Source: Orbicella franksi (Eukaryota). From it: a DNA stretch of 64,000 bases. Position numbers and translations under genes: made by a program. Positions 28,362 through 58,648 of the stretch are shown here, piece by piece (position 1 is the stretch's first letter; every line of letters starts with the position of its first letter). Under the pieces are notes generated by a model. The model worked only from the letters and a program-made list of their open reading frames with translations, ran no database searches and had not been told where the DNA came from. The DNA is taken from assembly GCA_964199315.1 (NCBI GenBank), contig OZ116707.1, positions 7,626,001-7,690,000 of the forward strand, written 5' to 3'.

Positions 28362-29650
28362 CAATGGAACAAAGTGATGTCAGTGCAATGGCAAGGTGAA
28401 CCCCGGTTGACCGAAAGGAGGCGGGCCGTTGCAGAATTTTGGTGTGTTTACACCAGAAGCCCTGTTGGATCATGTCCTCGCCAACAGGTTGTACAAGGCC
28501 AGTCAAGTCTATGGGACCAAAAGTCGATACCCCATCCAACAATTTGCGGGCACATCCGGTGCCGGTCCCATTGTTTGAGAAATTACTGGGCTTGTGCCCC
28601 GTGCCAAAGACATCATTTGGGAGCACAACGGAATGATGCAAGTCACCTCATTGTTGGTACAACTTGTGGAAAAGATGCTGCGAGTGGAAGCCCATCAGAC
28701 GGATCCAAAGAAAGGGGAATGTTGAACAACCTGTGACACGCCACGGCTGTGAAGGGCAGCGACAAACTCATGTTCTTCCTCAATATTACGCAAAAAGATA
28801 GCAATGACGATCAACGAACGTTTGCGCCACCCGTATTGAGTGAGTTTGACCTGCAAGAAGACCTGAGTGGCCCTTCAAAACCGTAGTGGGTGAAATCGTT
28901 GTTGGAACTAGAACGACTTACAGGTCACGACGGTCCAAGACATGAGAGGGAGTTCCATTGTAACTATGGCGGGGTTCCCATTTCAGTGCACTTTTGTCCT
29001 AGAGAACAGACCCAGAGAACCTTTTTACTATTGCCCCAATCGATTTGCTAACTGACACGACGTCATTGAACATGTGAAGGCCATGCACCAGGGAGCGGCT
29101 TTGACAGAGGAAATTGTGATGAAGATCGCCTGGGTAGACGACCAACTGGCAGACATGGAGTTTGGCAAGTTGATGCAACCCATCAATGAAATATCCAAGG
29201 TTCGTGAACTCAAATTGGATGAAAAGAACGCAGAGGTATTGCGCTGGAGGCCAACTTTACATGCTGACTTGCACGAAATGTCGTGCATTATCATGCAGAA
29301 CACTAGGCTCTTGGAATGCCTCCAACAAGATCGAGAGGTAGCGGTTAAAATGCTGGAATCATTGGATCGATCGACTTGGGATGGCAGTAAAACGACAAAG
29401 GCAGTTGTTTGCAGTACGCAACAGGGAAATCACTGAAGTCAAAAAACACATGCTAGCCCCAGCCACCCTAATTTCACTTCAGGCAACATGGAATGGAGCA
29501 AAGTTGCATAAAGCCTACGTCACAGGAAACATGTACAAGGAATTCACTCGGGTGACGGACCAATGTCTGTGGCTGGACAGGACGTTGGGTAAAGAAGCCT
29601 GTCAGTTCGAGCAGAAAGTCAAGGCAATAGGTGGTGTCGCCCCTAATTAG
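28362..29650 (+). pseudogene. Decayed ORF with a C2H2-like remnant, ending at the left junction of element A
   Basis: Fragments ..YCPNRFAN*HDVIEHVKAMH..; frames 29074-29436 and 29381-29650 are collinear; the final stop is formed by the CCCTAA|TTAG junction. Confidence 0.35.
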
Positions 29651-31934
29651 ATCCATCCGTACAGTGATTTGCCCCCCTCTAACCCAAATGCTTATTTTAC
29701 AGCGCCAATTTACTCTTATTGGTCAAAAATCGTATTAGATTAAAGAGCAGTGTCTGTTCTATATTTCTAAAAAAATCTGAATCAATTTGGTCTAATTCCC
29801 TCCGAGTTATGTTAAGACAAAGTTGGAAGAGGGGGGCCAGGTGCAACCATGGGAGAATCGGCTGGATTAGCTCAAAAAGCGCCGAAATTTTGCAAGCATT
29901 CCTTAGATTAGTTCCCAAAGGTCTCCACAGTCGAACCCTAGCCTAACCCGCCATGGTGATCTAAGAAAATTGGATTTGCCAAAAAATGTAGTTGGGGTAT
30001 AGTGGTCACTTTTCAGATGAACCCTAGATCAGAGGGACTTTTCTTAAATTTTTTACTTTTTTACTTAAGAGAGTATATCTCGCTTAATATTGACAGTTAA
30101 GACTTGAAATTTGGCACAATTATTGCTTAACTATTTGGCTAAGTCTGTGCCAAGTTTCATTGAGATTGGCTGAAATCTAAATTTTTTACGAATTTTTTTC
30201 TGACCTAGTGTCTCTTTCTGAGATTTAGGGGGGCGAATCCTCCAGCCAACAGTTTTACATTTTCTTTTTTTTAGCATGAAGGTTTCAACATTTTTGAATG
30301 TTTTATATACCAATAGAAAGGTCTTGATGAGGCAATCTTAGTGATGTCCTTACTTTAGACTAACCCTCAAAAGCCGCTTGACAGTGGAGCAAAAACCATT
30401 AACAAAGGGGGTGAGGATGCTCATTTTTAAAAACTCTCAAAAAATTCAATTTTCATTATTACATGTTAACAATTATACCATATGCAAAGAAATTCATGTA
30501 ATACTTATTTCTGTACTTAAAAACATTACAAACAATTATCTTTCATACAGTAGGGTCATTAATACTAAGTTACTAAAAACTTAATACTAAAATGACTTTG
30601 AAAAAAATTGTTTTTTTAATCTTAGGCTGACTCAGTTACAAAACCACAAGTGGCAAAAACTAAGTATCTCAAATGTAGATATCTGAATGTTAATCTGATT
30701 CTGAAAAAATGACGTCAATTGACTCAATTGTTAGGTACTTACGAATATTTCAACTCTTTAAATTGCATCAAAAATCTAAGGGGAAATTGATACTACCATT
30801 TTTTGGTGGACTCTGAAATCTTTTTAATATCCTTCTTCCAACTTCTTTTCCCATAGTAAATATTGTCCGTTATAGGTCTTTGAAACAGCACCATTCTCGT
30901 TGTTGCTCTTTTAAACTAGCAGAAATAAATTACAGTGAAAGTTGTGTATTACGGGGGCAAATCACCACTCAAGAGGGGTCTTTACAAAAAGTACCATAAA
31001 ACATATCAGTTTCCACTTTTTCCTCTGTTTTTTTTAATATTAGATAGACAGGTTAATGCTACAAGACATATTTTTGTGAAACTTTTTCATAGCAAACTGA
31101 CGGCACAATTAACTTGCAAAATGTGCAAATTGTGTTTTCATGAAAAAAGAAGGTGGTCAACGCTTTAGCTAATAAAATGCTTTTTCTTTAGGGTTAAGAC
31201 ATGAGACTTCCTACAAATGTAACCTAATACCTAACCTAATAGTGTAGAAAGTTTCATTAAGATTGGTTAAAATTTAATTGTTTTATGATTGTTTTATTGG
31301 TAGAAATTATTTCTTGGAACAGGGGGGCGAATCCCGCTTCCCTAATTTCAACTAATACTCAGCGTGGTTTCAATACTTTTACGTGGTTTTTACACCAATA
31401 GGAAGGTCTCAATTAGGGTTATAAAATGGTATAATTATTTTTTACTGACCCTCAAAATCCGATTCAAAATCAGGAAAAGTTCTAAACTGGAAGGGGGGCC
31501 AGGAGACCGCAATTACCTTGCAAAATTGTTACCGCACAAAATGCTTCATTCTCAGGGTTTAGACTTGAAACTTATCAAAATTGTAACCTCATTATGTGGC
31601 TTAACGCTCAGCAAGTTTCATGGTGATTGGTTAAAATGTAATCTTTTTATGCCTTTCATTCCTCCAGCAATGTTTGGTTTTTTAAGGGGGCGAATCCCGT
31701 TTTTCTAGTTGTAACTTTTAAACCTTGTGGTTTTAATCTTTTTGAAAGATTTTTACACCAATAGAAAGGTCTTGTTGCGGGTTATACCATGATGTCATTA
31801 GTTTTGACTCACCCTTGAAAACCCATTGAAAGTTGAGCAAAAGATCAAAACCAGAAGGGGGGCCAGGAGACCAAGTAACGCGCAAGTACGCCTTGTGGAC
31901 CTACAAAACCCTCATTACAGACAAGCCTTGGATG

Positions 31935-32520
31935 GTGAGTACACGCTTTTTGAGCTCCGTTATTTTTGCTGTTTGGCACCCTTAGAACACTGGGCAGAGG
32001 CAATCCAACTATCGGAAGAGGTGTCTAAGGTGCTCGGGGACCTTTCTTTAACATTTTCTTCCAATAAAAAACGGTTGCCTCTGCGCAGCCTTGGTCAAAG
32101 TTTAAGGGTGCTATCTTGACCAATATGTTGTTGAAGGACCTCGTTATTAGAACTGGAGGACCTTTTATTGATGTTTTGATGTTATATCATGCTTGTTGAT
32201 GTTGTAAGGAACCGTTTGGTGTTGATTTTGTGGAAATCGGTTCCTTTGTTGATTAGTTATGACGTCATTTGTGTCGAAACTTTACACCTTAATAACTTTA
32301 TGAGGTTTTAACCATTTGGCCAGCAAACTGTAGCGTCGGATAGGCCTTGACATAGGCTACGTGCATGCCAAATTTGGTAGCAAATGATAAAATCCTCGCA
32401 AAGTTATTAGCGGTTAAAGTTTTATACAAAATGGCGGACACAAGTTTGTTGGTACCACGCCCTCAGCAGTTTTTGAACGTGAAAATGAGGGTAACTTTAA
32501 TTGCTTATAACTCTTAGAGG
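31935..32520 (+). promoter_or_regulatory. Conserved 5'-intron module X upstream of the YR-A gene
   Basis: Begins at donor GTGAGT; acceptor ttattttcag at ~32950 precedes ATG 32982; contains AAAATGGCGG (YY1-like); homologous to 43633-44193 (inverted) and 52463-53050. Confidence 0.6.
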
Positions 32521-32981
32521 ATATTGTGCCAGTGTTTCAAATTCACAGGGTTTGTAGAATAGGCTAAGGGCTCTTCGTCTAGGTTGTTGGTTTCACTCTG
32601 CACTAGAATATATGTAAGTGCCAGAGGACCAGAAGCTGTTAAAGTGTTCAAAACTAAAGTTTAAGAAGATTTGACAGTTTGAGTTGAAACTTGAGAGTTA
32701 TGTCCTTGCTAGGATAAGGGCTCTTCGTCTAGGTTGTTGGTTTCGCTCTCCACTAGAATATATGTAAGTGCCAGAGCACCAGAAGCAGTTAAAGTGTTCA
32801 CAACTAAAGTTTAAGAAGATTTGACAGTTTGAGTTGAAACTTGCTAGGCTAAGGGCTCTTCGTCTAGGTTGTTGGTTTCACTTCTCACTACAATGTCTGT
32901 AAGTACCGTCAGCCGCTGGGTTTAGTTACCATTCCTAACATTATTTTCAGCCTTTTTGACACTGGTTTAACAATCTACAAA

Positions 32982-33845
32982 ATGGCGAGCTCCTTGCCAA
33001 ATGTCAAAAAGCTCCTGCAAACAGCTTCAGCTGGAGAGAAGGAGGCCCTGAAACATCTGGGCATAGATCGTGGCTTTACGTACGAGTGTCCGCCTCGCTT
33101 CAATCCAGCCACCACATCTAAAGAGGCCTTGCAACAGCAGCTAACAGACACTATCTTTTTCACCGAGGCGGCCAATAGGCTGCACCTTGATTCAGCAGAA
33201 GAAATAGCGAGAACTGCGATACAGCATATCATCCACAGCTACTTCTGTCTCTTTGACCGTCTGCCAGACGTAGACAGCATCCTAAGTGGCCCGGACCTTG
33301 CCAAAGAGCTGCTGGACAACGTCGTTGAATTAACTTGGGCCACACAGATCCTTCGTCGGTTTGAAAAAGAAGGCAGCAAAAAGCAGAAGACAGCGACGAA
33401 GCAGCAGAAGACAGCAATGCTTCCGACAGCGAAGGTTGCGGTGACGAGTACCATCCGGAAGGCTCTTCCTCCAAAAGCTGTTCCTCTTCGGACGATCATC
33501 CTAAAAGGAAGCGCTCGCCTTCACCACCAATCGAGACTTCCCCGAAGAAGGCAAAGACACCCTCTGTTCCGAAGTCGTCACCAGGCAAAGGTTGATCCCA
33601 CCACAAGAAGTACGCCTGCCCTGTGCCAAAGTGCTCATTCCACGGCAGTGACCTTCGTCGACATCTCCAAACCCACGTACGAAAATGCGAGGTGGACGAA
33701 AATGAAGTCGAGAAGATGTTGACAATCGTCTGTGCTGGCCCGCAGCAGCGTGGAAACTTGCAAACGAGGAAAGGCCGCCGACCTCAGAAGGGCAAGCGAA
33801 AGAAGTGGTGCCCGGTACCTGCCTGCAACCAAGTCCTTTTAGATC
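32982..33845 (+). pseudogene. YR-A polyprotein, N-terminal part (two C2H2-type fingers)
   Basis: MASSLPNVKK.., frameshift near 33500, then YACPVPKCSFHGSDLRRHLQTH and KWCPVPACNQVLLD, cut by the LINE; homologous to YR-B. Confidence 0.85.
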
Positions 33846-34215
33846 CTTTTTTTTTTTTTTTTTTTTATTGCAAAACACAGGGAAAAAAAACAACTTACAG
33901 TTCAACTACTTACATTACTTATGGGACAATTACCTACATCACTTACTGGATAATTACTAACAATACAATTACTTACATTACTTACACTACAATAAGTTAC
34001 ATTGTATTAATCAATTAATTAATTAAAAAGACTATTTACTACTTACATACAATACATGTTACTTACAATACTGACAAGTGCAACACTTGTTAAGGTTGAC
34101 CTACAGTACAATAATATCCATGCACAGTGTTAGCCTTAGGGTTTTCTTCATTTTTTTTTTATACAGTTGCTTGTTGGTAGATACGTTTAATTATTATTAT
34201 CACCCACTTAGATTT

Positions 34216-37200
34216 CTAAAGATTATCATTTGACGCTGCTCCAGTTTTGAGGCTGTTGTAACATGCCAGAAAGACAGAGAAATGTTTCATTTCAGGGGGC
34301 AAGTTGCGTGTCCTACACGACCATATATAATATCTTGCCACAAGAAAATTAAAATTAAGTTTCTGTTTATTCTTTGATTTGTCTGGCCTTAGGCCTAAGA
34401 CTATATTTAAAGAAAGGTTGTATGTTCTCAATGCAAGATTTTGGCTTACAAGAAGCTCCTTAAAGTTTTGCCAGAAGGTAGAGACAACTCTACAGGACCA
34501 GAAAAGATGAATTAGGCTTTCCTTCTCAGTTTTGCAGAAACTGCAGAGATCGTTATCTTTTATTCCTACTTTTTTAAGAAAATCATTAGTCGCCAGTCGT
34601 CTATGCAGCAATTTGAATTGAAATACAATTAGTTTTATAGATTTTGTACACTGAAAAGATAGCTGGTACGCCGCACTCCAGTCTATTGGTTCATGGGCTT
34701 CAAAGGCACAATCCGTAGCCCATTTTTCTTGACTCTTGGTTGGACACCTTTGTTTAAGACCAATTATTTTTTTATAGGCCTGTCTGCTTGGTTTACTTGC
34801 TTTCATAAATTTCGTATAAAAGCTTTCGTATTGTATATTTATATTATTGTGTAAAGGTATTTTGATTTTTTTTAAAGCGGATAACAGCCCATAAAAGCAA
34901 GATAATTTGTTTCAGTGATACCATACCGATCTTTGAATTCAGAAAAGGATAGGAAGGTGTCTGAATCTTTCATCAAATGCGAAACCCTGTTAATCCTTTT
35001 TTGCTGCCATTTTTTGTAGAAGATTGGTCTGTTATCGATTCTTATAAGGGAGTTGTGCCAAAGGCTCTGAGAGCGAAAATGGTCTGTATTATTCTCGTAA
35101 GTGATTTCAGTCCAGATATTTAAGATTTCCACAATAAATGGATAGGATAAATTGACATACTTTGACAGGTCTTTTTTGCTAAGGTTGCCGCTGAACAAGG
35201 CTCTGCCACCGTAGTTCCGGAGTTCTAAGTCCAAAAAAAGTTTCCATTTTCCGTGATTGTTTACATCAGTATATTTTTTGACCCAGGTAGTTTTCAATCC
35301 TTTATTGAAGGATTCAATATCAATCATTTTTAAGCCGCCTTTTTCATAGTCATTAATCATTACTTCCCTCTTAATTTTGTCGCCTTTGCCGTTCCATAAG
35401 AAATCATAGAAGAGCCTATTGATTTCCCTTAAGACACGGTGATTAGTCATGAGGGGAGACAAAATGTATACAAGTTGGGACGCAATTAAACTTTTTAGAA
35501 CAGTAATTTTGCCAAAAAGGGTAAGTCGACGACACTCCCAACAGCTTAGGCTATTTTTGATTTTTATCAATTTTTCGTTGTAGTTCAGCTCTACTGTTAG
35601 GTCAGGATTAGTCGAGAACCATACTCCGAGAGCTTTGGTCTTTCCTTTAACCCATTTTAGGTCTCTTTCTGGGCATAATTTGTCTTCTTTTTCGGCATTA
35701 GCACCGATCCAAAGGGCTTCCGTCTTTTTGTTATTTAATTTAAGGCCAGATATCCGTTGAAAATTATCCAATATATGCAGAGAAGATGTAAGAGATTCCT
35801 TGGAACCATCGAGTATTAAAGTGGTGTCATCTGCATACTGACTAATTTTTATTTCATTTCCATTCACAAAGATGCCTTTGACATTTTGGTTTTTCCTAAT
35901 TGCATCCGCTCGAATCTCAACACAGAGAATAAAAAGATACGGAGAAAGGGGGCAACCCTGCCTTACTCCTCTTTCGAGCTTAAAAAAGTCGCTGGCCCAT
36001 CCGTTATTGAGGATGCAGCTTTCTGTGTGATCGTAGCATAGTTTAATCCAGTTGATTAGTGATTGTCCAAAGTTGTAATATTTAAATGTTTTTTGAATGA
36101 AAGGCCACTCTACTGTATCAAATGCTTTTTCGAAGTCAAGAAAAAGTAAAAGACCAGGGGCTTTTTTAGCCGTTGCGTAATGAATTATACTGTCAATGAG
36201 TCTAATATTCTCCCCGATAAACCTATCTTTAAGAAATCCAGTTTGATCATTATCTACAAGGTTCGGTAGAACTTTTTTTAGTCTGTTTGCAATAGCTTTG
36301 GTCGCGATTTTGTAGTCGCAGTTCAAAAGAGTTATTGGTCTCCAGTTCTTAATAAGGTATGGTTCTGCATCTTTTTTGGGGATTAATTTAATGATTCCGC
36401 GTCTCTGGGTTACCAAAAATTGACCTGTTTGATATGCAAAATTAATCGAATTAACAAGTAAATCCGACAAATCGTTCCAGAAAACTTTATAAAATTCGGC
36501 AGGTATTCCATCTGAGCCTGGTGTTTTATTTGTTTCTGTATTTTTTAAGGCTTGTAAACATTCCTCTTTGGTCAGCAGGCCTTCGCATGACATTTGATCG
36601 TCTGGGTTCAGTACCTTAGTATTATTCTCGTCGAAAAACATGTCATTAACATAAGTGTCGTTGATATTCATATGGGAGCTATATGGATTTCTGTAAAAGG
36701 ATTCACACTGATTTAGAATTTCTTTGTCAGTATTTACTGTTTCATCATCATTAATTTTTAGCTGACTTATTACTCCCTGTTTGTAGTGCCTTTTTTCCAT
36801 GTTTAAAAAGTATTTTGTATTTCTTTCTCCCTCACTATACCATCTACATTTCGATCTTAAGATTGCACCTTTGGTGCAGTACTCAATTATATTCTCCAAT
36901 TCTGCCTTTTTTCTTTCTAATTCCTGAGCCCCAACTTGTTTTGCATTTTCCTCGTCGCTTGTTGTTTCCATATATATTTGCAAGTTGTTAATTGCTTTTT
37001 CTAGCTCTTCTTCCCGTTTTAAAATTTTAGCTTTTTTGGCAGCTGCATATTTTAATGATTGTTCTCGGATTTTCATTTTTATCATCTCCCACAATAATGC
37101 GTGGTTCACAGTGTCATCATTTTGATATTCTTCTTTAACAGCTTGGATTGTTGATTTTATTTGGTTAACGTATTCAATTTTGTTCAAGAAAGAAGTATTA

Positions 37201-37946
37201 AGTTTCCAAAAGCCTGGTCCTCTTGGATTCGAATGAACAGCTATACTGATATCGATCATTGAGTGGCCTGTTTTGTATCCTGTCAAAATATCGGCGTGCA
37301 TGACATTACACATTAAGCTTTGGCTAACAAGAAAGAAGTCTAGTCGGCATTGAATTTTGGGTTTCCGTCGGCGCCAAGTATATCTTAGGCAATCGGGATG
37401 TAGCACTCTCCAAGCATCAATTAAATCTAAGTTTTCCATAAATTCCTGAACGATCCTAACTGAATTATTGTGTGTTCTTGCGACGCCACCTTTCTTGTCT
37501 TTATCTAAATTAAGCACTAAGTTGAAATCGCCACCAATAATTACTTCTTCACATTGAAAATCTGATAAATGCTCGAAGAAGCCTTCGAAGAAAGCCGCGT
37601 CATCGTCGTTGGGAGCGTAAATGGTGGCCAGCGTTATATACTTTTGGTTGGTTTGGATGTCACAAATAATGAATCATCCATTAGGATCACAGTACACTCG
37701 TTTCATTTCGAAATCGAATGTATTATTGAATAGAATTGCAACTCCTGCCTTAGCGCCCGTACAGCAACTAAAAAAGGATTTGTACCCCCATTCTGCCAAC
37801 CACATAGTGGACGTGCTCTCACAGCAATGGACTTCTTGTAAAAAATAAATAGAGCTGTTTTTTGCCTTGAGCCAAGAGAACATTTCCCCTCTCTTTAGCA
37901 TGTCTCCCAAGCCTCTTACATTAAGAGAACATATTTTAAGATCCAT
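34216..37946 (-). pseudogene. LINE ORF2 (AP endonuclease, reverse transcriptase, C-terminal CCHC)
   Basis: SLNVRGL..FLQEVH..IYAPN..GGDFN; WRPITLLNCDYK..LDFEKAFD..GVRQGCPLSP..YADD; CSFC..ESLIHLFWSC. In-frame TGA at 37674 and frameshift near 34890. Confidence 0.95.
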
Positions 37947-38457
37947 GCATCCTCAAAGTGTCTAGAGATAAAAATTATTCCTGGGAGCAGCTGAAGTGTC
38001 ACAACCATGTTGAAGATAATGCGGGTGCTTGAAATTAACGGTTTTCTATAATAATCCTTGAACAAGCTAATTCTGTATATAAATGGAAGCTTCCAAACAT
38101 TGGAAGCAAATACTGATCTAAAAGCTAACCACAAGACACGCTCATACAGAGCGACTATAACAAGTATAAAGCTTGGACAACCTAACACATAATTACAAAA
38201 TAAAAAGCTAAGAACGAATATTGACTGCTTACCTACCCAGTGCATCAAAGTTTTTGTTTGGGCAGTTTCACACCATCGGTAAATAGCGTGTTTGATGTTC
38301 TGCTCCTTTTGTGGTGGCTAAGGATGTAATTAATTTGTCTTGTTTTTTGCAGCTTATCGAGCTTGTGTTTAGTAGAAATTTAAGTGGCAAGTATTAGGTG
38401 AGAAAAGGCATGGAAAAAAAATAACCTGTCCAAAATCTACATATGTAAATTTGAAAA

Positions 38458-38943
38458 TTAAGCGAAAGGCTCGTCTTGAGAAATAAATTTTCCATCAATA
38501 TATAATCTGTCCGGATATTTCTTACTGAAAAACGCTGTGTGACCCTTCTTCCTTGCATCTTTAAGTTTATCTCGCTGTTTTTTCCTTAAGTCATAAAGTT
38601 CCTTTGGAATATCATCGAAGACGGAGAAATCTTTTCCCTTCAGATGCTTGCGGGCTTCTGACATAACTTCTTCTCTATCAGTATAGCGCAGAAATCTAGC
38701 AATAATTGGTCTAGGACCTTTATCATTTGGCTTACCCAGACGGTGGATCCTTTGGAGCTCTATCCTGTCTCTAGCGTTGCTGATCTTCAACTCTTGCTCC
38801 AGAAAGTTGTACATGACTTGCTTCGTGTCTTCGGTCATATGTGGCGAACCATCCATATTCGCGTCTCCGGTGACGTTACTTGTATTTTCCTCTATTCCGA
38901 AGAACTTTAAATTTTCTCTCCTATTGTAAGTTTCAAAGTACAC
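38458..38943 (-). CDS. LINE ORF1 C-terminal part (5'-truncated)
   Basis: RRENLKFFGIEE..RIHRLG..PRPIIARFL..DRLYIDG, typical of L1/Tx1-type ORF1. Confidence 0.85.
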   Translation of the reverse strand: MYFETYNRRENLKFFGIEENTSNVTGDANMDGSPHMTEDTKQVMYNFLEQELKISNARDRIELQRIHRLGKPNDKGPRPIIARFLRYTDREEVMSEARKHLKGKDFSVFDDIPKELYDLRKKQRDKLKDARKKGHTAFFSKKYPDRLYIDGKFISQDEPFA

Positions 38944-38944
38944 A

Positions 38945-41259: not shown

Positions 41260-41766
41260 TCGTTCCTGTGTGACCCAGTGACACCGCATCTCCGGTTAAA
41301 GTTTGCCTCATTGAGGATGGAGGTGCTGTGCTCTTCATTGGCGCCACCGTTGTGTTTCCTGGAGCGTGATGGCTGGCAGCGAGTTTGCAAGAAGACGAAG
41401 AACCTGTTGAAGAGCAGGAGGTAATCGCCCAGTGACCCTGCATCTCCGGTTAAAGTTTGCCTCATTGAGGATGGAGATGCTGTGCTCTTCATTGGTGCCA
41501 CCGTTGTGTTTCCTGAAAAAAACAAAACAATCAGAAAAAGAAGTTGAAATTCCTAATATAGTTCAGCCAAGCTGAGCTTCTGTAAAATATCATTGTAAAT
41601 AGAATTGTAACATATGGCAAACTAAAGTATTTTTATTTATTGTAAATAGTATTGTATATAGAATTGTAAATATTTTAACTGTACATAAAACTGTAAATAT
41701 TGTAAATATTTCCTCGCGACAATGAGTCGGGCTGGTGACCCGATGATACCCTCCGGGGACTGAGCA

Positions 41767-41825
41767 GTTTGTCAGGGATCAAACGCGAGCTGGGGTAGCC
41801 AACCCCCGGGGAGTGCCCCACAAAC
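41767..41825 (-). ncRNA. 59-nt conserved structured motif M2, copy 1
   Basis: Minus strand GTTTGT-GGGGCACTCCCCG-GGGGTTGGCTACCCC-AGCTCGCGTTTGATCCCTG-ACAAAC; stems covary with the other two copies. Confidence 0.55.
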
Positions 41826-48000: not shown

Positions 48001-48205
48001 GGCAATATATAGAATGGCAGACACTTTTATTTCACTGTTCAGTGTGTATTTCCATCAAAAGAGGTTAACTGCTGGTTAAGCGGTTAACTTCCGGGAAGTT
48101 ACTCATTTATACCTAAATATTGTACATAAAATTAACTGACGATGAGATTGTGAAGTGTTAAATGCACATTCTCGTCGTCAGTATTCCTGGGTTCGAGACC
48201 AACTC
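45075..48205 (+). repeat. About 329-bp satellite (~9.5 units) with a tRNA-like B box in each unit
   Basis: GGGTTCGAYACC at 45268, 45597, 45927, 46237, 46566, 46896, 47225, 47532, 47861 and 48189; the first unit retains an A box TGGCGTAATGG; units also contain AACTTCCGG palindromes. Confidence 0.92.
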
Positions 48206-48349
48206 TAAGGCAGGGAGTTCGAGCCCTCCTCAGAACATCTATATGAATTTTTTTTCCTTTTTTCCTTTTTTTAAGAGTTTCTGTTCTTTGCTACTTGCTA
48301 AATTTATGAAAAAAAATATTTTTTCCATTTTTAAAGATTTCGTTTGCGG

Positions 48350-48565
48350 ATGGCCGCCATCTTGGATTTTTGTCCAAAGGGGTTGCATAGGCATTTTGGT
48401 CAAAATTTTGAGTGTCTAAAAGACTTTCTTTTACTTACTTTGTCGCGAAAATAGTTCTCTTAGCCACAAAGTAGGTAAAAAAAAAGTCTTTTAGACACTT
48501 TAAAAATTTTGACTAAAATGCCCATACAACCCTTTTAGAAAAAATCCAAGATGGTGGCCATTTTC
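48350..48565. repeat. Long palindrome near the right end of element A
   Basis: Core arms AGTGTCTAAAAGACTTT / AAAGTCTTTTAGACACT, extending ~90 bp on each side; homologous to 58128-58286. Confidence 0.8.
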
Positions 48566-48914
48566 AAATCAGTTTTTCAAGGCAGATATCTCCTAACCTT
48601 TTTAACTAGAAAGAAAAGTAAATGCATAGTTGAACAGCCAATTGATCAGAGAACAGGTACGCAGAATAAGTTCAAAATCAAATAAATACTGTCCGAGTAA
48701 ACAAACTTTAAAAATGGTCCAAAAATTAATGTCAAAAAACAGGTGTAAAAAATCATAAAAAAATAAAACACTTTCTCACGGAAAAAAACTATCACATCTT
48801 AAGCAGCATCCAAAAGTTAACATATCCTGAAAATTACAAAGAATTCACCCATAATCTGCCAAATCTAAAGCAAGTTCAACCATATGCAAATGAGGTAAGG
48901 GGGCCAGGTGACGG

Positions 48915-49090
48915 CAAAGAGGGCGAATCCTGACCGGAAGGAGGGTGAATCACGACCAAAATGGGGGCGAATCCCGACAAAGGGGGCAAATCCCGACCGG
49001 AAGGGGGGCGAGGTGACTCTAGGTGGGCGACTCCCGCCAAAAAGGGGGGTGAATCCTGGCCGAAGGGGGGCGAGGTGACGCATGAATCCG

Positions 49091-49091
<1 letters not shown>
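48915..49091 (+). repeat. Subterminal array of ~8 GGGGGCGAATCC-type motifs at ~21-22-bp spacing
   Basis: Read directly; the same motif is dispersed at ~30228, 30953, 31322 and 31686 and inverted at 29666. Confidence 0.85.
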
Positions 49092-49122
<31 letters not shown>

Positions 49123-49172
49123 ACCCTAAACCTAAACCCTAACCCTAACCCTAACCCTAACCCTAACCCTAA
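49092..49172. repeat. Interstitial telomeric tract, 13 CCCTAA/CCCTAAA-type units
   Basis: Read directly; lies exactly between the right arm of A and the left arm of B. Confidence 0.97.
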
Positions 49173-50321
49173 TTAGGTTCCTGAAGTGTTGTCCTGCCCA
49201 CGAGTTGCCCTAGCCAATGTTGTCTGACGGGCTTAACATTTCACAACTTTTGGAATGTGCAGTGCTGTAGTTTAGTCCCTTGTCTACCTTCCAGAGGAAT
49301 TTCAAAACGCAACGTTAAATTCTGTGTAATTTACAGGAGGTCAAAGACACCAAAGTGGGCAAGACAACACAGATGGGAGAATACATGAAGAAAATTGCCT
49401 TTTTTCATGAAAATTGAGCAGGATATGTTTAAGACCAATTAAAGGACCTCCACGGGTGCCCTGGGGCTAACCCTAGCTAAATAGAAATTTGAAAAATTTC
49501 GAAGGAAAAAAATGCTGGCTAGTTATAACATGTATACTACACTTGAGATGGTTTCTTGACTTTTTTTTCACAAAGTCGAACTCAGATGAATTTAAAAAAT
49601 ATCATTTTCTTTAAAATGCGAGGGTTAGCGCTGAAATTTGGACACGATGTAACTATGTAAATTTCATGATATTCCTGCAAGTTTCAACTTATTCTGTCAA
49701 AAAGAACAATTTTTACAGTTAGTTTTCCACGAAAACACCTCTCCAAATTTTTGGGTGGGCAAAGCTTATTTTTTTTTTACCGGTTTTTTTCCTTTAATTT
49801 TTTAAAAGTTTTTTAATGTTCATATATCATTAAAAAGGTCTTTTTACGCACTACATGTTGATAGCCTTTAGAAGCCTAGCCCTTGCAATGCTTAGGAGAA
49901 AATCGTTCATAAAAGTAACGCAGGTGGGCAGGACAACACATAAGGAGGTTGCCAAAAACAGTTATAAAAAATGAACATTTCAATCAATTTCTTTGAAATT
50001 TCTCCATTACAATGTTGAATAATGCACTAAACTTTTTGAAAGTTTTCAACTTTTTTGAAAGCATTGCAACAGAGATAGAGAAGTCTAAATTTTGCACATG
50101 TTTAAAATAGGTCTTTTTAAAGTCAAGAGAATTTTTATGTTTAAAAGATTATAACTACAAAGTTATTGAGTGAAATCGCGACTTACCTCTTGAGTTTCAA
50201 TAACTTCAACTGCAAAGTGAGCACAAAAAGTTTGGTAGAGTATTGTCGAATATTTGATGAGATATCATTGAGATTCTAAATTTATGCAAATTAGGTGAAC
50301 ATTTTGAAGATCTGCTTTTAA

Positions 50322-52243
50322 AGAGGCTTAACTCATCGTCGTTTCAATATATTCATGTGATGTTCTTACAGCAAATACTCCTATACAATAGCCATGTTTG
50401 ATACACGTTCCAAAATTTTTTGAAATAAACTTCATGGAATCATCACCTTTTGAAGACATGCCTTTTTTAAAAAAGCGTTTTTCTGTGACAATCTAGTGTC
50501 AAACTTTGCAAGGCTGTAGTATGCTATTGCTTCATTGGAATTCAATGAATTTTTCACAGATCTTTGCACTTGGATAATGTCGTAACATATTGAAAATTCA
50601 TGGCATTCCAATGAAAGCAAAGGAAGATATAGCACTTTGCACTTGCAATTGAGTTAGAGAAATTACGTGACTCATTATAAGACTTTGTATGGGAAATTGA
50701 ACTTCTCCATTACCTAGCAACCACACATGCAGAAACCTATACAAACCTACTCAAAAGATTCTTTATGTTGACAACTGTCATTTGATGAAGCCAAATCACG
50801 TATAAAATGTGAAATCACGTATAAAAAGCCCTCACTGTCAGAATCAGCAGAGTGGGCAAATCAACAAAGGGGGCAAGACAACACACATAGTGGGCAAGAC
50901 AACACTTGAAGGGGGCAAGACAACACACATGTGGGGGCAAGACAACAAACTGTGGGGGCAAGACAACACAGTGTGGGAAACATTATGTCATTTTTTAAAG
51001 CCAATATTAATACTAATCAAAACAAATAAGAACTATTAGACTATATCGTCTGTGATATTCAACTTTATTCATTAAAAAGAAAGTAAATTAACATTTTTCA
51101 CAGTTATTTAAGTACCTCGAGAGTACGCATTGCAGACCTATCTTTGTTAATAAAAAAAATTGATAAAAAATTCCACAATGGGCCGATTCATATGCAGTTT
51201 TCACCAATGAAGAGGTGAAGATCTCCGCTTTCCTGGTCTGACAATTTTAACCATGGTTTCACAAAATAAGCTTTTCCATATAGAGGTTTAACTCATTGTC
51301 GTTTCAATATATTCATGTGATGTTCTTACAGCAAATACTTCTATACAATAGCCATGTTTGATACATGTTCCAAAATGTTTTGAAATAAACTTCATGGAAT
51401 CATCACCTTTTGAAGACATGCCTTTTTTAAAAAAGCGTTTTTCTGTGACAATCTAGTGTCAAACTTTGCAAGGCTGTAGTACGCTTTTGCTTCATTGGAA
51501 TTCAATGAATTTTTCACAGATCTTTGCACTTGGATAATGCCGTAACATATTGAAAATTCATGGCATTCCAATGAAAGCAAAGGAAGATATAGCACTTTGC
51601 ACTTGCAATTGAGTTAGAGAAATTACGTGACTCATTATAAGACTTTGTATGGGAAATTGAACTTCTCCATTACCTAGCAACCACACATGCAGAAACCTAT
51701 ACCAACCTACTCAAAACATTCCTTATGTTGATGACTATCATTTGCTGAAGCCAAATCATGTATAAAATGTGAAATCACGTATAAAAAAGCCCTCACTGTC
51801 AGAATCAGCAGAGTGGGCAAATTAACAAAGGGACAAGACAACACACATAGTGGGCAAGACAACACTTGAAGGGGGCAAGACAACACACATGTGGGGGCAA
51901 GACAACACACTGTGGGGGCAAGACAACACACAGTGCGGGAAACATTATGTCATTTTTTTTAAGCCAATATTAATACTAATCAAAACAAAGAACAACTGTT
52001 AGACTATATCCTCTGTGATATTCAACTTTATTCATTAAAAAGAAAGTAAATTAACATTTTTCACAGTTATTTAAGTACCTTGAGAGTACGCATTGCAGAC
52101 CTATCTTTGTTAATAAAAAAAATTGATAAAAAATTCCACAATGGGCCAATTCATATGCAGTTTTCACCAATGAAGAGGTGAAGATCTCCGCTTTCCTGGT
52201 CTGACAATTTTAACCATGGTTTCACGAAATAAGCTTTTCCATA
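50322..52243. repeat. 960-bp tandem duplication; each copy has a GGGCAAGACAACAC cluster
   Basis: Units start at 50322 and 51282; clusters at ~50850-50972 and ~51820-51935. Confidence 0.92.
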
Positions 52244-52462
52244 TCACTTATGAAAATTACGCTTGATTGACAGCTGCCCATCAACCTCAAAATTTTTATT
52301 CAACTTATGACAAGAAAGAGCAATCACTTGGCTATACTCTGTGTGATTTTCAAGATGTTTGGTTAAAACGTAACTTTTGTACACGTTATCAAAGTTTTTC
52401 AAGTACCGTGTAAGTACGCCTTGCGGGCCTACAAACCACCATTAAAGACAAGCCTTGGAAGG

Positions 52463-53050
52463 GTAAGTACACTTTTTTTGAGCTCCGTTATTTTTGCTGT
52501 TTGGCACCCTTAGAACACTGAGCAGAAGCAATCAAACTATCGGAAGAGGTGTCTAAGGTGCTCGGGCACCTTTCTTAAACATTTTCTTCCCATAAAAAAT
52601 GGTTGCTTCTGCACAGGCTATGGTCAAAGTTTAAGGGTGCACTGTTTGACCACTATGTGTTTGAAGGACCTTGTTATTAGAACTTGAGGACCTTCTATTG
52701 ATGTTTTGATGTTATATTATGCTTGTTCATGTTGTAAGGAACCGTTTGGTGTTAATTTTTGTGAAATCGGTTCCTTTGTTAATTAGTTATGATGTCATTT
52801 GTGTCGAAACGTTACACCTTAATAACTTTGCCAGGTTTTAACTATTTGGCCAGCAAATTGTCGTGTTAGATAGGCCTTAACATAGGCTACGTGCATACCA
52901 AATTTTGTAAAATATGATAAAATCCTTGCAAAGTTATTAGCGGTTTAAGTTTTATACAAAATGGCGGACACAAGTTTGTCGGTACCATACCCTTAGGGGT
53001 TTTTTAACGCGAAAACGAGGTAAGGCTTTAACTTCCTCAAAGTCTTAGAG
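52463..53050 (+). promoter_or_regulatory. Module X copy in element B (5' intron)
   Basis: Donor GTAAGT at 52463; acceptor ttttccccttag shortly before ATG 53349; homologous to 31935-32520. Confidence 0.6.
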
Positions 53051-53348
53051 GATATTATGCCAGTGTTTCAAATTCACAGACATTATAAAATGGAGCAAGG
53101 GCTCTTCATTCAGGTTGTTGGTTTCACTTGGCACTAAGATATCTGTAAGTACTATGACTCAAATTTTAACTGTCCATAACTCAAAGAGAATGTAAGTGTT
53201 TCGGCTGAAATTTAGGGAACAATTACTACATATAAGGGGCTAACTGTTGATGCATTCTTGCATCAAACCGTTTAATTCTCTATGAGATATCAAAGTATAG
53301 ACATGGAGGTAAATGTTTTCCCCTTAGCTCTTTGGCTACTCAAAGAAA

Positions 53349-54383
53349 ATGGATGCGAAGTTAAATGGAATGGATCGGGTGAAGCATTTGGCACAGTTAG
53401 AAATGTGGGGCGACGAAGATGCCATCAAAAAACTATTCTTGGAGAACGTGGAGAGTGCAAAAGTCCCTGAAATAAAAGAGATTGAAAGGTCGGCAATTAC
53501 CACATGCCTTAATGTAGGAGGGAAAGTATACGTAGCAGGAGTGAAAATGGGATTGAATTGTTTGGAGAACAGTGCAAAAAACTTAATGGCGCTAGCCCAA
53601 TTTCTAGAAAAAGATCAGCTGAAAACAACCATTAAGCCTCAAATTGATAAAGACGATGTCTTGGTCAAAATGAGCCATGTTTGCAAGGACGCTGTCAATT
53701 GGTGTAAGAAGATTGGCGAAGAGAATGATGGAAGGTTCGTAAGGAATCTAAATTGGTATGCCGAGAAACTGGTAGATGCCCGAAATGGAGACCACGAAAC
53801 CCTTAAGCTACTAGACTTTGAGCGGATGCCTTCTTTAAAAATAAAGCCAATAGAACGGGTGCTGAGCCACATGTCATTGCAGCTTGACTACAGCAGGGCA
53901 AATGAGATCGCCACAACTGCTATCTACATGCAAAATACAACTTTGAGAGTAGTGAATCAGTTGACAATGGCCATGGCTACGCTCATGGCTAGAAAGTACT
54001 ATCCAGAAAAGAAAGCGCTTAGTTCTAAACCTGATGGACAAGACGTCTGCCAATCGCTGAATTCTGAGCTCAGTGAGCTGACATCATGGATGGACTTCAT
54101 AGAAGAAAACCGAAGGAAAGAAACAAACATTGAGGAGCAATTCGAAGACGAGGTACTGGATCCGTCATATCAACCAAACTCTTCAAGTGAAGAGAGTATG
54201 ACTGAAGGTGGAGACAAGACAGAAAGTGAGGCAGAAGAGGGGAAAAAAGGAGGAGAGAGAGTCCATGGAGGCACGTCAAGTATCTTAAACCAATTGCAAT
54301 TACAAGAGAAACTTTGCAAGCTGATTATCAGGATGCTGCCCTTTCCTTTTTGTGTGCCAAAGAACTCAGCTTGCAAGCGCTAA
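53349..54383 (+). CDS. Helical ORF of unknown function, probably the N-terminal extension of the YR-B polyprotein
   Basis: 344 open codons; an overlapping frame from ~54240 (PIAITRETLQADYQDAA..) resembles the YR-A N-terminus (PATTSKEALQQQLTDT..), implying frameshifts rather than a separate gene. Confidence 0.6.
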   Translation: MDAKLNGMDRVKHLAQLEMWGDEDAIKKLFLENVESAKVPEIKEIERSAITTCLNVGGKVYVAGVKMGLNCLENSAKNLMALAQFLEKDQLKTTIKPQIDKDDVLVKMSHVCKDAVNWCKKIGEENDGRFVRNLNWYAEKLVDARNGDHETLKLLDFERMPSLKIKPIERVLSHMSLQLDYSRANEIATTAIYMQNTTLRVVNQLTMAMATLMARKYYPEKKALSSKPDGQDVCQSLNSELSELTSWMDFIEENRRKETNIEEQFEDEVLDPSYQPNSSSEESMTEGGDKTESEAEEGKKGGERVHGGTSSILNQLQLQEKLCKLIIRMLPFPFCVPKNSACKR

Positions 54384-54498
54384 CATTAAACTCCGGATTG
54401 GCAATCAAATATATGACTCACGTAGCGAGGGAGGAGTTTGCAATAGACCTAAAAAGAAATCATGATATCAAGCTGTAAAAGAAGAAAAGAAGGAGATA

Positions 54499-57200
54499 AT
54501 GGCTGCAATAAAGGGTGACCTGGCAAATGCAAAAGTTGAAAAGTCTCAAAGCCAGGGAACTTCTTCGAATGAAGAAACAAGTAATGCAATGAAAACCGAA
54601 GGACAAAGCTACACAAGAAAGAGGAAACTGATTGAAACCAAAGAAGCAGAGTCAAGTCAGAAACACGCTAAAGTCAGTAACTCTAAGTCAACCTTAAAGG
54701 CGAAGTTTGACTTGACGATCAAAAAGGCATCCGAGAGCAACGATTCAGATGACAAAGAGGACGCCTTGGAGGAAACGGATGAAGAAACTGTTGCATCCAA
54801 AAAAAGGAGTCACCACGTGACAGTAAAATGTAGAGTTCCAGGATGCGGGCTGAGGGTGAAAGACATCAAGCGACATCTAAAGAGTCATGTGACCAGAAAG
54901 CAGCTAGAAGAGAGCGATGTCCCAAGGGCTGCTGCTATTTTAAAGGCAGGGAAGAGTCTCAGGGGGCCTCCACTAACCACCTCTAAAAAAGAAGCTGGAA
55001 GACCCGGCAGATTTAGAAAATGGTGCCCGGTGCCTGGATGCAACACCATCACTACCTACATAACCCAGCATTTGACAAAGGCACACAAGTTAAAGAGCAC
55101 AAACGTCGCATACAAGGTGCACTTGAAGAGCGCAAAGAGGTACAAGGGCATACAAGAGCTTGACATGTTGCTGAGCATGAAACCAGCTACCCCTGAAAAG
55201 ACAGAAATACAACACCAACGTGAGAAAACTAAGATTATGCCAGACAAAGCAAAAGCAGCAGAATTAGAAGATGAAACGGACGAGGAGGCTGCGGAACCAA
55301 TTGCAGAAGATAAAAGTGAAGGAGAACAGAGTGGAAAGCTTCCAGAAGACAAAGACGAAACTGATGAAGAGTCCGAAGAGGAAGCTAACGACAAGGAAGA
55401 ACTTGATCTGAAAAAGGTTAAGAAGCCAGAGTACTATTCAGCCACAACATTCTTAAATGCCCGTCACCAATGGCTCTGTGGGTTCTTCTCCTTTCTTCAA
55501 CTACCCTCAGCCGGGTACAAGAAACTTCAAAATTGGCTCCAACATGTCAGTCAAGTCCACAATATCCTTGAGGCACTCGACCCAAATGGTGACGACATCA
55601 CTATTCTGGGAAACGATTTTGGCGACATTGTATGGACAAAGTGGGTACACCCACATCTCCAAAACAACACCAAAGCACCAGGTACAATAACATCCTACTT
55701 GACGAGCCTGGAGAAGTTTTACATGTTTGTCACCTCCAATCGATACAACAAGAAAGACATGCCACCTCTGCATGGAAATTATCTGGACACATTCAAAGAA
55801 ACCATTAGTGCCCTGAAAGGCTGGAGGGCAACTGTTGACAATGAAACGCAACACATCCAGCACCGCGGCTTCCTAAAAGAGTGTGACACTATTCTAACAC
55901 CAGCTGACCTTAAGGGACTTGAGGAATCCAAACCGTACAGGGCAGGAATAAAAGCACTAAATGAGGCAAAAGCAGGGAAAAAACTCTCACTTCAAGAATT
56001 TACAGATGCACGCGATCTACTCCTAGTAAAACTTGCGCTGCTCGTGGGCTCAAGACCTGGCCCTTTGGAAAATGCCCTTTTAGAGGACTACTACGGTGCA
56101 AAGGAGAAAGATGGCAACAGCATCATCCTAATTCCGAAGCATAAGCGATCCAAAGCAGGCCCAGCAGCTTTAGGGATGGACAAAGAGCTCCAAATGCTCA
56201 TGGAAGTCTATGTAAAGAAGATCAGACCTATGTTTGCAAAAACTGACGTAGAGCATCTCTTTGTTAAAACTGACGGGGAACAATTCCAAAATAACACCAT
56301 TGGCAAACGTTTTGCAGCCTTCTGGGAGAAAAGTGGCGTGAGGAAGGACAAAAGAATCAGCCAAACATCAGTGAGAAAGTTTGTAACCACCGTGACCAAA
56401 CGGCACGCTCCACAGGAAATAGGCAACATACAGAAAGTCTTGTGCCATGGAGAGAGGTTGTCTAGAAATTGTTATTTAAGAGAAGACTTGACAGAGACGG
56501 CATCACGGGCAATGAACGTAATCAAGGACGTCACGTCAAAAGAAAGTGCCACACAATCAGAAGCCTCTAAGGATCACACTTCTGAACAAAATCCTCAGTT
56601 AAGTGAAGAAAATAATCCTCCTGTAGCAACAAAGGATGATGCCAGTCAAGAAGAACCTGAGCCGAAAAACCTATCATCATTATCCCACCTACCATCATGC
56701 AACAGACCCCTGGCAAACCAAGTCCACTAACCCTGAGGGAGAAAGAACAGATAACAAGACTCTTTTCAAAGGAGATAGAGAAAGGAGCTACGCAACAGCT
56801 GAAGACGGTCCGAAATAAAATGTGCACGACAATTGTCCTGCGAAGACTTATAACATCAAAGTCAAAAGTTAAACAAGTGACCAACTTTGTCAACTACCTT
56901 GTAGCCAGCAGGCCCTCAGAAGATGTCGAAGATTTGCCAGAGGAAAGAGTAGAAGTGGATGAATGGCTTGAAGGGATCGACGTGGAATCCTCACTCAAAT
57001 CTGGCAGCCGGAAGTTCTGGGATGAGGCAGATACAAAAACCATTGAAAAGGAATTCAAAAAGGTCAAAAAGTGCCCAACCAAACGGGAGCTGAAAGTCTT
57101 GTTCTTAAAAAACGAACGCCTTGCAGCCATCTGCGATAAGGAGGGATTCGCAAGACGCTACGAAAAAGTGAAGAGCATCATGAAGAGGTTGAACAAGTAA
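54499..57200 (+). pseudogene. YR-B: two C2H2-type fingers, acidic linker, core-binding and catalytic YR domains, Myb/SANT-like tail
   Basis: CRVPGC..KRHLKSH; WCPVPGC..QHLTKAH; GSRPG (R), KHKRS (K), TSVRK (R), LCH, NCY (Y). Frameshift near 56680 leads into ..RKFWDEADT..YEKVKSIMK. Confidence 0.92.
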
Positions 57201-57349
57201 TTGTCCATCGCAATGGTTGGTCCCGGTGGTGGGTGTGGTGTCATGTTGAGTTTGGCTAAAAGTAAAAAAAAAAATTTAAAATGAGTTCGTCCCGGCGGTG
57301 GTTGTGGCTACAAATAATATAGTAAACAACAATGCAAAATGTCTGAGAT

Positions 57350-57408
57350 ATTCGTCAGGGATCAAACACAAGCTAGGGTAACCAACCCCTGGGGAGTGCC
57401 CCACGAAT
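57350..57408 (-). ncRNA. Structured motif M2, copy 3
   Basis: Minus strand ATTCGT-GGGGCACTCCCCA-GGGGTTGGTTACCCT-AGCTTGTGTTTGATCCCTG-ACGAAT. Confidence 0.55.
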
Positions 57409-57659
57409 CTTCTCATTCTGCTTGTAAGTCGTTCCAAAGAAAAACAAAAAAACAAAAAACAAAAAAAGTCTAAAAGCAAAAGCAAAAAAAAGGTAAAACA
57501 AAAAAAAAACAAAAAAAAAGTGTATAAATGTTTGTATTCATGTCATGTATTGTAATGTATATGTTTGTCCCCGGATCTGAGGGCGATTCCTATTGAGGTG
57601 AATAGCTCGATGAAAGTGAAGGGTGTTGTGACGTCCTTGTGTTTGTTGTGTATGTGTTC

Positions 57660-57782
57660 CCTCTCACAGTAGCTCTGCCTTGTCGCGGTTGAGAGGCTTG
57701 TGTGCCTTCATGACCCTAAGAGCTATTCTGGCTATAATTGCCGGACATGCCTTAAGGGGAAAGGCCAGACTAAAGGGGCTAC
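57660..57782 (+). ncRNA. HDV-like ribozyme-fold candidate M1 (element B)
   Basis: P1 CCTCTCA/TGAGAGG, P2 GTAGCTCT/AGGGGCTAC, P3 GCC/GGT, L3 TTGTCGC, variable P4, J4/2 CTAA. Confidence 0.5.
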
Positions 57783-58127
57783 ACTACGTTTTTAACAAGT
57801 TTAATCTTCAGCAATAAACATTGAAAAAAAGGACACGGGTTTTACCTGAAGGAGTGAAATAACAGACTTCGAAACTTTATAATTAATGTAACTTACCAGA
57901 TAGCTCAATAAAATTGTTTACTCTTCAAGTGCATGACTACTGCTACATTTCCATTATGCCATCATTTTCCAACATGCTAACTGTGCTTGTCCATTTGAAT
58001 GACACCTGTCAAAAACAAATAAATCCTTAACATTCGCTGAGTATATTCTTTGCCACTTGCTAAATCTATGAAAAAAATTTTGCATTGCAAAATATTTTTT
58101 GTTGCCATTTTAAAGATTTCATTTGCG

Positions 58128-58286
58128 GATGGCCAACATCTTGGATTTTTGTCTAAAGGGGTTGCATAAACCTTTTAATCAAATTTTGAAAGTGTCTAAA
58201 AGACTTTCTTTTACTTAGTTTATCGCGACAATAGTTCTTGTAGCTATAAACTAAGTAAAAGAAAGTCTTTTAGACACTTTCAAAAT
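58128..58286. repeat. Palindrome with perfect 41-bp arms near the right end of element B
   Basis: 58183-58223 is the exact reverse complement of 58246-58286 (22-nt spacer); homologous to the element A palindrome. Confidence 0.85.
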
Positions 58287-58442
58287 CTCCAAATATGGCA
58301 AACATGAATTCGCAATCCTAGCCCTAACCAACACCCTCACAAGATTTCTGATGGCAAAAGAAATAATGTGTCCAAATTTAAGACAACTCACCCATAATGC
58401 ACAGGATCTAAGGAAAAAAACCCCTCAATGTCCGAGCCAGAA

Positions 58443-58594
58443 GAGTGGGCAAATCAACAAAGGGGGCAAGACAACAAAAAAAGTGGGCAAGACAACACAT
58501 TAAGTGGGCAAGACAACACACACGTGGGGGCAAGACAACACACGAAAGTGGGCAGGACAACACACAGAGTGGGCAGGACGACACAGGAACCTAG
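58443..58594 (+). repeat. Subterminal array of ~7 GTGGGCAAGACAACAC motifs at ~21-bp spacing
   Basis: Read directly; inverted copy at 49186-49201. Confidence 0.87.
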
Positions 58595-58648
58595 CCCTAA
58601 CCCCTAACCCCTAACCCCTAACTACTAACCCCTAACCCCTAACCCCTA
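58595..58648. repeat. Telomere-like tract: one CCCTAA followed by (CCCCTAA)n variants, 8 units
   Basis: Read directly; abuts the right arm of element B. Confidence 0.95.

Follow-up and report, generated by a model that had tools for sequence, protein, structure and literature searches.

Why two long mobile elements of a coral genome stand head to tail with telomere-type repeats at their ends, and whether those repeats were the target of their integration, is the question raised by the locus described here. The analyzed window, a 64,000-nucleotide stretch of the 497-Mb Orbicella franksi genome, corresponds to C10:7,626,001-7,690,000 and contains no N (C-numbers denote contigs of the source genome, L-numbers are locus labels). 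Site-specific recombination at the hexamer CCCTAA by a tyrosine recombinase (YR) was found to be the best reading of the two elements, termed A and B, and the same interpretation in a preliminary description of the locus was partly supported. The array consists of the following parts, given in window coordinates.

29641-29646, plus strand: single CCCTAA unit left of A, read directly, with gtcgc just before it
29647-49091, plus strand: element A, 19.4 kb, an old and degraded YR element that starts TTAGATCCAT and ends ATGAATCCGA
49092-49172, plus strand: C-strand telomeric tract between A and B, 81 bp, about 13 units, mostly CCCTAA hexamers with a few extra A
49173-58594, plus strand: element B, 9.4 kb, a YR element whose open reading frames (ORFs) are still open; it starts TTAGGTTCCT and ends AGGAACCTAG
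58595-58648, plus strand: C-strand tract right of B, 54 bp, mostly CCCCTAA heptamers
58649-60614, plus strand: right flank of B, 1.35 units of a 1452-bp satellite, with the tract abutting the unit boundary exactly

Direct reading of these junctions bore out the earlier statements that both elements start CCCTAA/TTAG and end at CCCTAA, and that their inverted 10-bp arms agree at 9/10 positions in B and 7/10 in A. The double hexamer CCCTAACCCTAA occurs eight times in the window, against 0.01 expected, and all occurrences lie within the middle tract. Contig C1 begins (CCCTAA)n, so that the true telomere of the source genome is also built from this hexamer. The array itself is located 7.6 Mb inside the 31-Mb contig C10, and its tracts are therefore interstitial rather than at a chromosome end. 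Removal of A and B had been expected to restore one continuous tract of ~135 bp. This held only loosely, as the total length of the three pieces is 141 bp and they are unlike each other, the left one being a single hexamer, the middle one mostly hexamers and the right one mostly heptamers. The left flank of A is unique, its sole match in the genome being its own locus. From this flank an open frame of about 100 codons (29345-29650), for which Pfam gave no match, runs through the CCCTAA and stops at a TAG in the first bases of A; at L030, the ORF of a long interspersed nuclear element (LINE) likewise ends within the CCCTAA that adjoins an element 5' end.

The claim that both elements encode a YR was confirmed at two positions in the window.

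54499-56730, plus strand: B ORF2, 743 aa, with two Cys/His finger-like motifs (around residues 110-195) and a C-terminal YR domain
39435-40712, plus strand: A YR domain, of which 39636-40712 is open

The C-terminal domain of B ORF2 matches PF00589 weakly, and the same Pfam family was matched by 10 of 20 family members, with a best E-value of 3e-8. A family profile matched the XerA structure 5hxy (E 5.6e-4) and placed Arg, Lys, Arg, His, and Tyr opposite their counterparts. When 20 relatives were aligned (B ORF2 numbering), R519, K549, R626, and H650 were invariant and Y659 was present in at least 90%. Over 39435-40544, the A domain is 40% identical to residues 287-656 of B ORF2 (tblastn). Pfam searches of the ORFs of the A and B elements proper detected neither a reverse transcriptase (RT) nor a DDE domain, the only RT in the span being that of a LINE nested in A, and the family gave no DUF3504 or GCR1_C signal. 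Judged by these sequence features, A and B are members of the YR superfamily, whose hallmarks they carry with the exception of the HxxR histidine. A nine-exon YR elsewhere in the window (14776-21957) is no close relative of theirs, tblastn having given no match at E 1e-3.

Element ends were tabulated from four coral assemblies, in which many copies are known from one side only. The source genome contains approximately 20 YR matches, and the 4.7-8.1 Mb part of C10 accounts for many of these. Relatives were also present in further coral assemblies, Pocillopora damicornis proteins being the nearest with a name. Across the four assemblies, YR identity to B ranges from 30% to 89%. A telomeric unit in the register ...TAA/TT precedes 14 of the 15 element 5' ends, and a telomeric unit starting CCC directly follows the 3' end in 16 of 18 cases, the other two continuing with CCCCT or CCCT. 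All 5' termini (15/15) begin TT[AG][GC], with no 5' truncation series among the ends examined, and the orientation of the elements relative to the C-strand is constant across all tabulated ends. Other genomic copies of B have the same start and end bases as the copy in the window. Families share their outermost 10 bases, which read TTAGGTTCCT or a close variant of it and are themselves telomere-like; the subterminal repeats are family-specific and 15-22 bp long. Tracts at 3' ends are slightly more constant than those at 5' ends. The preliminary description had set the ends and flanks of other copies as a test, with variable target-site duplications as the refuting outcome: about 30 further ends from the four assemblies had the same termini and the hexamer in the same register, and the flank hexamer was constant, without variable duplications.

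Individual copies add to this pattern. Nine head-to-tail pairs have only a telomeric tract between them, which in one pair is reduced to TTA and CCCTAA. At L076, a solo element is set in phase within a short interstitial tract, of which 5 units lie on its left and 4.7 on its right, and the DNA outside is unique. On C5, a 1125-bp copy is a patchwork of five B segments that is internally deleted and has kept both ends, as non-autonomous DNA transposons do. The exact 17-mer of the 5' junction has only two matches in the genome, which indicates a low copy number; the second match (L048) is a bare 18-bp tract. Among assembled unitigs (200-450 bp, four runs), a loose end from another species has (CCCTAG)n before a B-type 5' end. 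At L052 of another coral (6170-6330 and 14102-16499), two elements are separated by a 2.4-kb degenerate satellite with a mixture of telomere-like and GAGCGCTAA-type units.

A and B probably represent two diverged families within one group of cut-and-paste-type coral DNA transposons, which would use their own YR and be specific for the telomere-type hexamer. In the proposed mechanism, the YR would bind the two inverted 10-bp termini as core-type sites around a hexamer-containing spacer, and the subterminal repeats would serve as accessory sites in the manner of phage attP arm sites. Recombination between flanking hexamers would release a circle in which the 3' arm, at least one CCCTAA unit and the 5' arm follow each other. 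For integration of this circle, strands would be exchanged inside a CCCTAA unit, and because the hexamer is asymmetric the orientation would be fixed. Junctions of resident copies, with a perfect arm next to the hexamer, would be better partners than naked repeats, which would explain the frequent head-to-tail arrays. A crossover could fall at any unit, so that a tract of variable length would leave with the circle and be deposited where telomeric repeats are scarce or absent.

Several results weigh against this reading. In place of the HxxR histidine of classical YRs, this family has Ser or Thr (T623 in B), a deviation at 1/6 positions. The two tracts that flank B are of different repeat types, hexameric on the left and heptameric on the right. 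ORF1, ORF2, and ORF3 of B are separate, as opposed to a single long ORF in relatives, and copies are 7-9% diverged; current activity is therefore unproven. The excision circles that had been predicted were not found: a scan of metagenome contigs for a 3' arm, 0-30 bases and a 5' arm yielded no circle junction and returned only the known chromosomal tandem junction at C10:6.367 Mb (L054, L060) and unrelated palindromes. No empty allele was seen, the unitigs on the 1125-bp C5 copy (200-450 bp, satellite flanks) giving uninterpretable joints. None of the copies examined lies at a contig end, terminal telomere tracts not having been surveyed, and a pattern search for interstitial tracts gave 7006 overlapping matches, swamped by true telomeres. 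Integration into telomeric repeats, as originally proposed, was supported in part, by register and orientation in some 30 ends; insertion into a true telomere was not seen, and paralogues of two sites lack the repeat. Among the metagenome contigs, Ga0196965_1042586 (L070 718-754) contains a perfect palindrome of two CCCTAATTAGGTTCCTG copies head to head, which may be two 5' ends facing each other.

The sites without a repeat in their paralogues, together with a third, also count against simple insertion into an existing tract. The C5 copy is flanked by 3.8 units at its 3' end only, the 5' junction reading CCTACTA/TTAGG, and it is hosted by a ~115-bp satellite of which other units have no telomeric repeat. 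The 1452-bp satellite on the right of B, also read at L039 4458-7933, is present at no fewer than 13 loci, many on small contigs, as well as on C4 near 34.08 Mb and C6 near 28 kb, ~25 kb from the ends of these contigs; its distribution is subtelomere-like. Where its units are uninterrupted, the boundary reads ...gcacc TTT tatttt... and contains no telomeric repeat. At C10:7,711,352, the preceding 1452-bp unit ends at the same boundary, where a tract of 30 bp leads over to another element's 5' end, so that the window and C10:7,711,352 hold two halves of one canonical satellite block, split at one point and 26.7 kb apart. At the third site, L030, a LINE ORF ends in one CCCTAA, to which a full element is joined; the element is followed by a bare CCCT. 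Such sites fit either a tract that was present first and then used, or tracts that travel with the excised element.

As to the split block, its right half adjoins the tract of B and its left half adjoins the 5' tract of the other element 26.7 kb further right. At its end the satellite unit reads CGTGCACC (L039 7920-7933), an inverse counterpart of TTAGGTGCACGG, the 5' terminus in a different YR family (L032 6877-6890), and the 1452-bp satellite may be derived from the 3' part of a YR element.

The alternative that follows from these sites is that the tracts belong to the elements: an excised form would carry (CCCTAA)n and need a minimal target match or none, and the elements would create interstitial telomeric tracts rather than seek them. 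This overlaps with site-specific recombination at the hexamer and differs from it in the target; we consider it unlikely, but it deserves serious attention. It would account for the 3'-only tract of the C5 derivative in a satellite otherwise without telomeric repeats, for the tract and element end that lie at two loci on a 1452-bp boundary that is repeat-free if uninterrupted, and for the L030 element between one CCCTAA and a bare CCCT. The single unit on the left of A and the slightly greater constancy of 3' tracts point in the same direction. Short interstitial telomeric tracts can, however, arise through telomerase-mediated break repair, and both the C5 and the 1452-bp sites could have gained their tract first by this route. 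Moreover, the L076 element is in phase between two similar tracts that give way to unique DNA, which is the arrangement to be expected after insertion into an existing tract. A long tract within the excised form would also place the recombinase-binding ends far apart, unlike in canonical YR sites (summarized in PMC3212892).

Less probable still, to the point that we give it little credence, is an origin of the arrays as chromosome-end remnants, in which end-on additions, in the manner of fly telomeric retrotransposons or endonuclease-deficient Penelope-like elements, were capped by telomerase and later internalized and the YR was not the integrator. The sense strand of every element does run with the C-strand, which is the polarity of telomere-attached retroelements, whose repeat-bearing 3' end is directed away from the telomere (example in PMC4522978). 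The head-to-tail arrays do have short tracts between the elements, and the satellite in the right flank of B occurs on many small contigs and, with matching polarity, ~25 kb from the C4 and C6 ends. Against this origin, the elements have no RT, their 5' ends are precise, with inverted repeats and no 5' truncation series, the register is fixed at both junctions, and the deletion derivative keeps both ends. The locus also lies deep inside its contig (7.6 Mb into 31 Mb) in a gap-free window.

A further argument came from distant relatives with YRs ~20% identical to that of B, which have the same finger-plus-YR layout. Their 3' build is also the same, with about ten subterminal repeats followed by (CT)26 or (CT)10. 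At another two (CT)n junctions the microsatellite has a 3' end before it and a 5' end after it, which places the elements in tandem.

L044 4300-4720; L046 4900-5260; L042 6000-6300; L037 7815-7900: (CT)n-flanked relatives, head to tail

The common build of these relatives makes the association with simple repeats a property of the whole group, independent of telomerase, and the telomeric-hexamer lineage is most likely sister to the (CT)n-using lineages. A chromosome-end origin is weakened by this result, as telomerase cannot make (CT)n. Mere coincidence, with ordinary DDE-type transposons making a 6-bp target duplication in repeat-rich DNA, is very improbable and was rejected: terminal inverted and subterminal repeats are typical of DDE transposons and the flanking 6-bp direct repeat resembles a target-site duplication, but no DDE transposase ORF was present, the sole catalytic domain is a YR, and the same hexamer occurs in the same register at ~30 ends from four assemblies, where a target duplication would vary.

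The further anatomy of B comprises the following features besides ORF2.

49173-49201, plus strand: 5' terminal inverted repeat, made up of the 10-bp terminus TTAGGTTCCT and one inverted copy of the subterminal motif
50319-52244, plus strand: internal tandem duplication of a 963-bp unit, copies 96.5% identical
53349-54383, plus strand: ORF1, 344 aa, of no recognizable family
56697-57200, plus strand: ORF3, 167 aa, overlapping the end of ORF2 in another frame
58184-58285, no strand assigned: hairpin whose 40-bp stem is perfect, located 0.3 kb short of the 3' end (-43.9 kcal/mol, z -16)
58457-58594, plus strand: 3' subterminal array, in which the 21-bp motif GGGCAAGACAACAC occurs six times, together with the 3' terminal inverted repeat, which has AGGAACCTAG at its end

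In the terminal inverted repeat of B, ~26 of 29 bases match, and there is a single indel of 3 bases. Each 963-bp copy contains an array of a 21-bp motif (50867-50977 and 51830-51939), the same motif as at the 3' end. Only three ORFs of at least 120 aa are present in B, all on the plus strand. Pfam and protein atlas searches gave no match for ORF1, a homologue of which is joined in frame with ORF2 in a 1080-aa gene of one relative; in relatives, the YR protein includes the ORF3 region as its C-terminal part.

Element A is longer and more degraded, and contains, in addition to its YR domain, the following features.

33596-33835, plus strand: finger-region remnant (N-terminal Cys/His), 39% identical to B ORF2 residues 104-184 (tblastn)
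34216-37517, minus strand: nested LINE (RVT_1, E 1e-41; zf-RVT, E 1e-9), no part of the YR element
40774-41247, plus strand: homologue of B ORF3, a region that in relatives is fused to the YR C-terminus
42757-43305, minus strand: Rap1-type Myb ORF, open, 182 aa, antisense to the YR (PF08914, E 3e-11, above the curated cut-off)
48383-48529, no strand assigned: hairpin ~0.6 kb from the 3' end, homologous to the B hairpin (-45 kcal/mol, z -13)
48909-49081, plus strand: 3' subterminal array of ~22-bp repeats of the GGGGCGAATCCCGAC type

The nested LINE splits the finger region from the YR domain. The terminal inverted repeat of A is weak, its match extending over ~32 bases, and its 5' end resembles the 5' end TTAGCATCATCC of another element, which comes after CCCTAACCCTAA in L052. 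The Rap1-Myb ORF is kept in L034 (5184-5723; 88% aa identity) and L033 (7420-7989; 81%), at the same relative position and on the same strand. This conservation in two other A-family copies indicates that the ORF is carried by the family-A element. It is better conserved between copies (81-88% aa) than the YR (69%, A versus L034).

Other observations concern the non-coding parts of the elements. A contains nine copies of a 330-bp repeat (45259-48203), the unit of which begins with a tRNA B-box-like GGTTCGA...; a related piece is found at L030 14361-14459, and the repeat may be an amplified SINE-like (short interspersed nuclear element) insert. Short segments downstream of the YR genes are common to A (41760-42007) and B (57343-57783) and 76-85% identical. 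The long, nearly perfect 3' hairpin is conserved at the same relative place in diverged families (A, B, L006, L007, L009, and L030 14101-14275). An Rfam search of 29000-59500, with E-values up to 1, found no HDV-like or hammerhead ribozyme and gave only trivial matches between the long hairpins and microRNA models.

Classical Cryptons, reportedly described by Goodwin et al. 2003, provide the first comparison among known systems. In fungi, oomycetes and animals, these elements have short direct repeats of 4-6 bp at both ends and no terminal inverted repeats (Kojima and Jurka 2011, PMC3212892). The coral elements share with them a YR as the sole recombination enzyme, the absence of RT and of repeats of the long terminal repeat (LTR) type, 4-6-bp terminal direct repeats taken to be recombination substrates and a proposed circle; a CCCTAA direct repeat is present at both ends in most copies. 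They differ in their inverted termini (10 bp, extending to ~29 bp in B), which are contrary to the Crypton description, and in their subterminal arrays, in a flanking repeat that is a tandem array instead of a single copy, and in lacking the DUF3504 or GCR1_C signal.

CryptonV is closer. In PMC8869645, CryptonV elements are named as target-specific cnidarian Cryptons of which some families inserted specifically in microsatellites, and the report is credited to Kapitonov and Jurka 2012, Repbase Reports 12:2034. The coral elements resemble this group in their cnidarian host, their nature as YR-encoding DNA transposons and their target-specific association with simple repeats, the (CT)n relatives corresponding to the "microsatellites"; they differ in that the published sentence names microsatellites and not telomeric repeats. 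The cnidarian host is indicated by the Pocillopora damicornis homologues and by sequencing runs containing the locus, which bear the label coral metagenome. The guess in the preliminary description that CryptonV-type families might be involved fits this one-line account of host and microsatellite target, and the A/B group most likely is Repbase CryptonV. That it was set beside CryptonV by a one-line description, and not by sequence, adds to the points on the negative side of the balance. A literature search found no paper that links Cryptons to the telomeric repeat, and hexamer specificity, the Rap1-Myb cargo and array-building possibly mark a new variant of CryptonV-type elements.

Resemblance to the silkworm non-LTR retrotransposons TRAS and SART (PMC7265360, PMC2868851) lies in residence in telomeric repeats at a fixed position and orientation. 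These retrotransposons are RNA-mediated, use an endonuclease and an RT and reside in real telomeres, whereas the coral elements have no RT, possess inverted termini, and are interstitial in the copies examined. Phage and integrative-element integrases such as lambda Int have inverted core-type sites around an asymmetric spacer, distant accessory arrays and tandem integration by attP x attL/attR recombination, as proposed here; this likeness is an analogy of site architecture, protein similarity being limited to the generic YR fold and the coral accessory sites being putative. Athena and Coprina, endonuclease-deficient Penelope-like elements whose telomere attachment is attributed to Gladyshev and Arkhipova 2007 in PMC3212892, share the C-strand polarity, the short tracts between head-to-tail copies and a subtelomere-like neighborhood, but encode an RT and are usually 5'-truncated, in contrast to the YR and the precise, inverted-repeat ends of the coral elements. 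More generally, telomere-specific non-LTR or Penelope-like elements, which have their own RT, prime from a 3' tail and are often 5'-truncated, did not match, as no RT was present and 15/15 5' ends lie at the same terminus. For DIRS, Ngaro, and PAT elements, no RT or RNase H was found, and their terminal structures, either inverted repeats combined with an internal complementary region or split direct repeats, were not noticed in repeat and self-similarity analyses, which included no dedicated search.

Target-specific DNA transposons are rare; PMC8869645 names Pokey, Dada, and some CryptonV elements as examples. No description of hexamer-specific, array-building YR transposons was found in the accessible literature. 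If Repbase CryptonV already includes hexamer-specific families, the value of the present results shrinks to the documentation of new families with their anatomy, which comprises inverted termini, accessory repeat arrays, a hairpin and tandem arrays.

Beyond the two elements of this window, we advance more tentatively, as a possibility that falls somewhat short of probable, that specificity for the telomeric hexamer is shared by a broad clade of coral YR transposons, that one family of this clade has its own shelterin-type Rap1-Myb gene, and that these transposons build arrays and carry telomeric tracts to internal sites. If true, this clade would be a DNA-level counterpart of telomere-specific retrotransposons, and a recombinase that recognizes the hexamer in one register would be the first such counterpart of TRAS and SART among DNA transposons. 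It would supply a natural pair of enzyme and site for studying how YRs read a tandem repeat, and the Rap1-type Myb gene carried by an element suggests a possible direct connection with telomere chromatin. For cnidarian genomes, such transposons would be a source of interstitial telomeric sequences and subtelomere-like blocks, and would explain in concrete terms how interstitial telomeric tracts, and subtelomere-like regions with a block structure, arise and spread.

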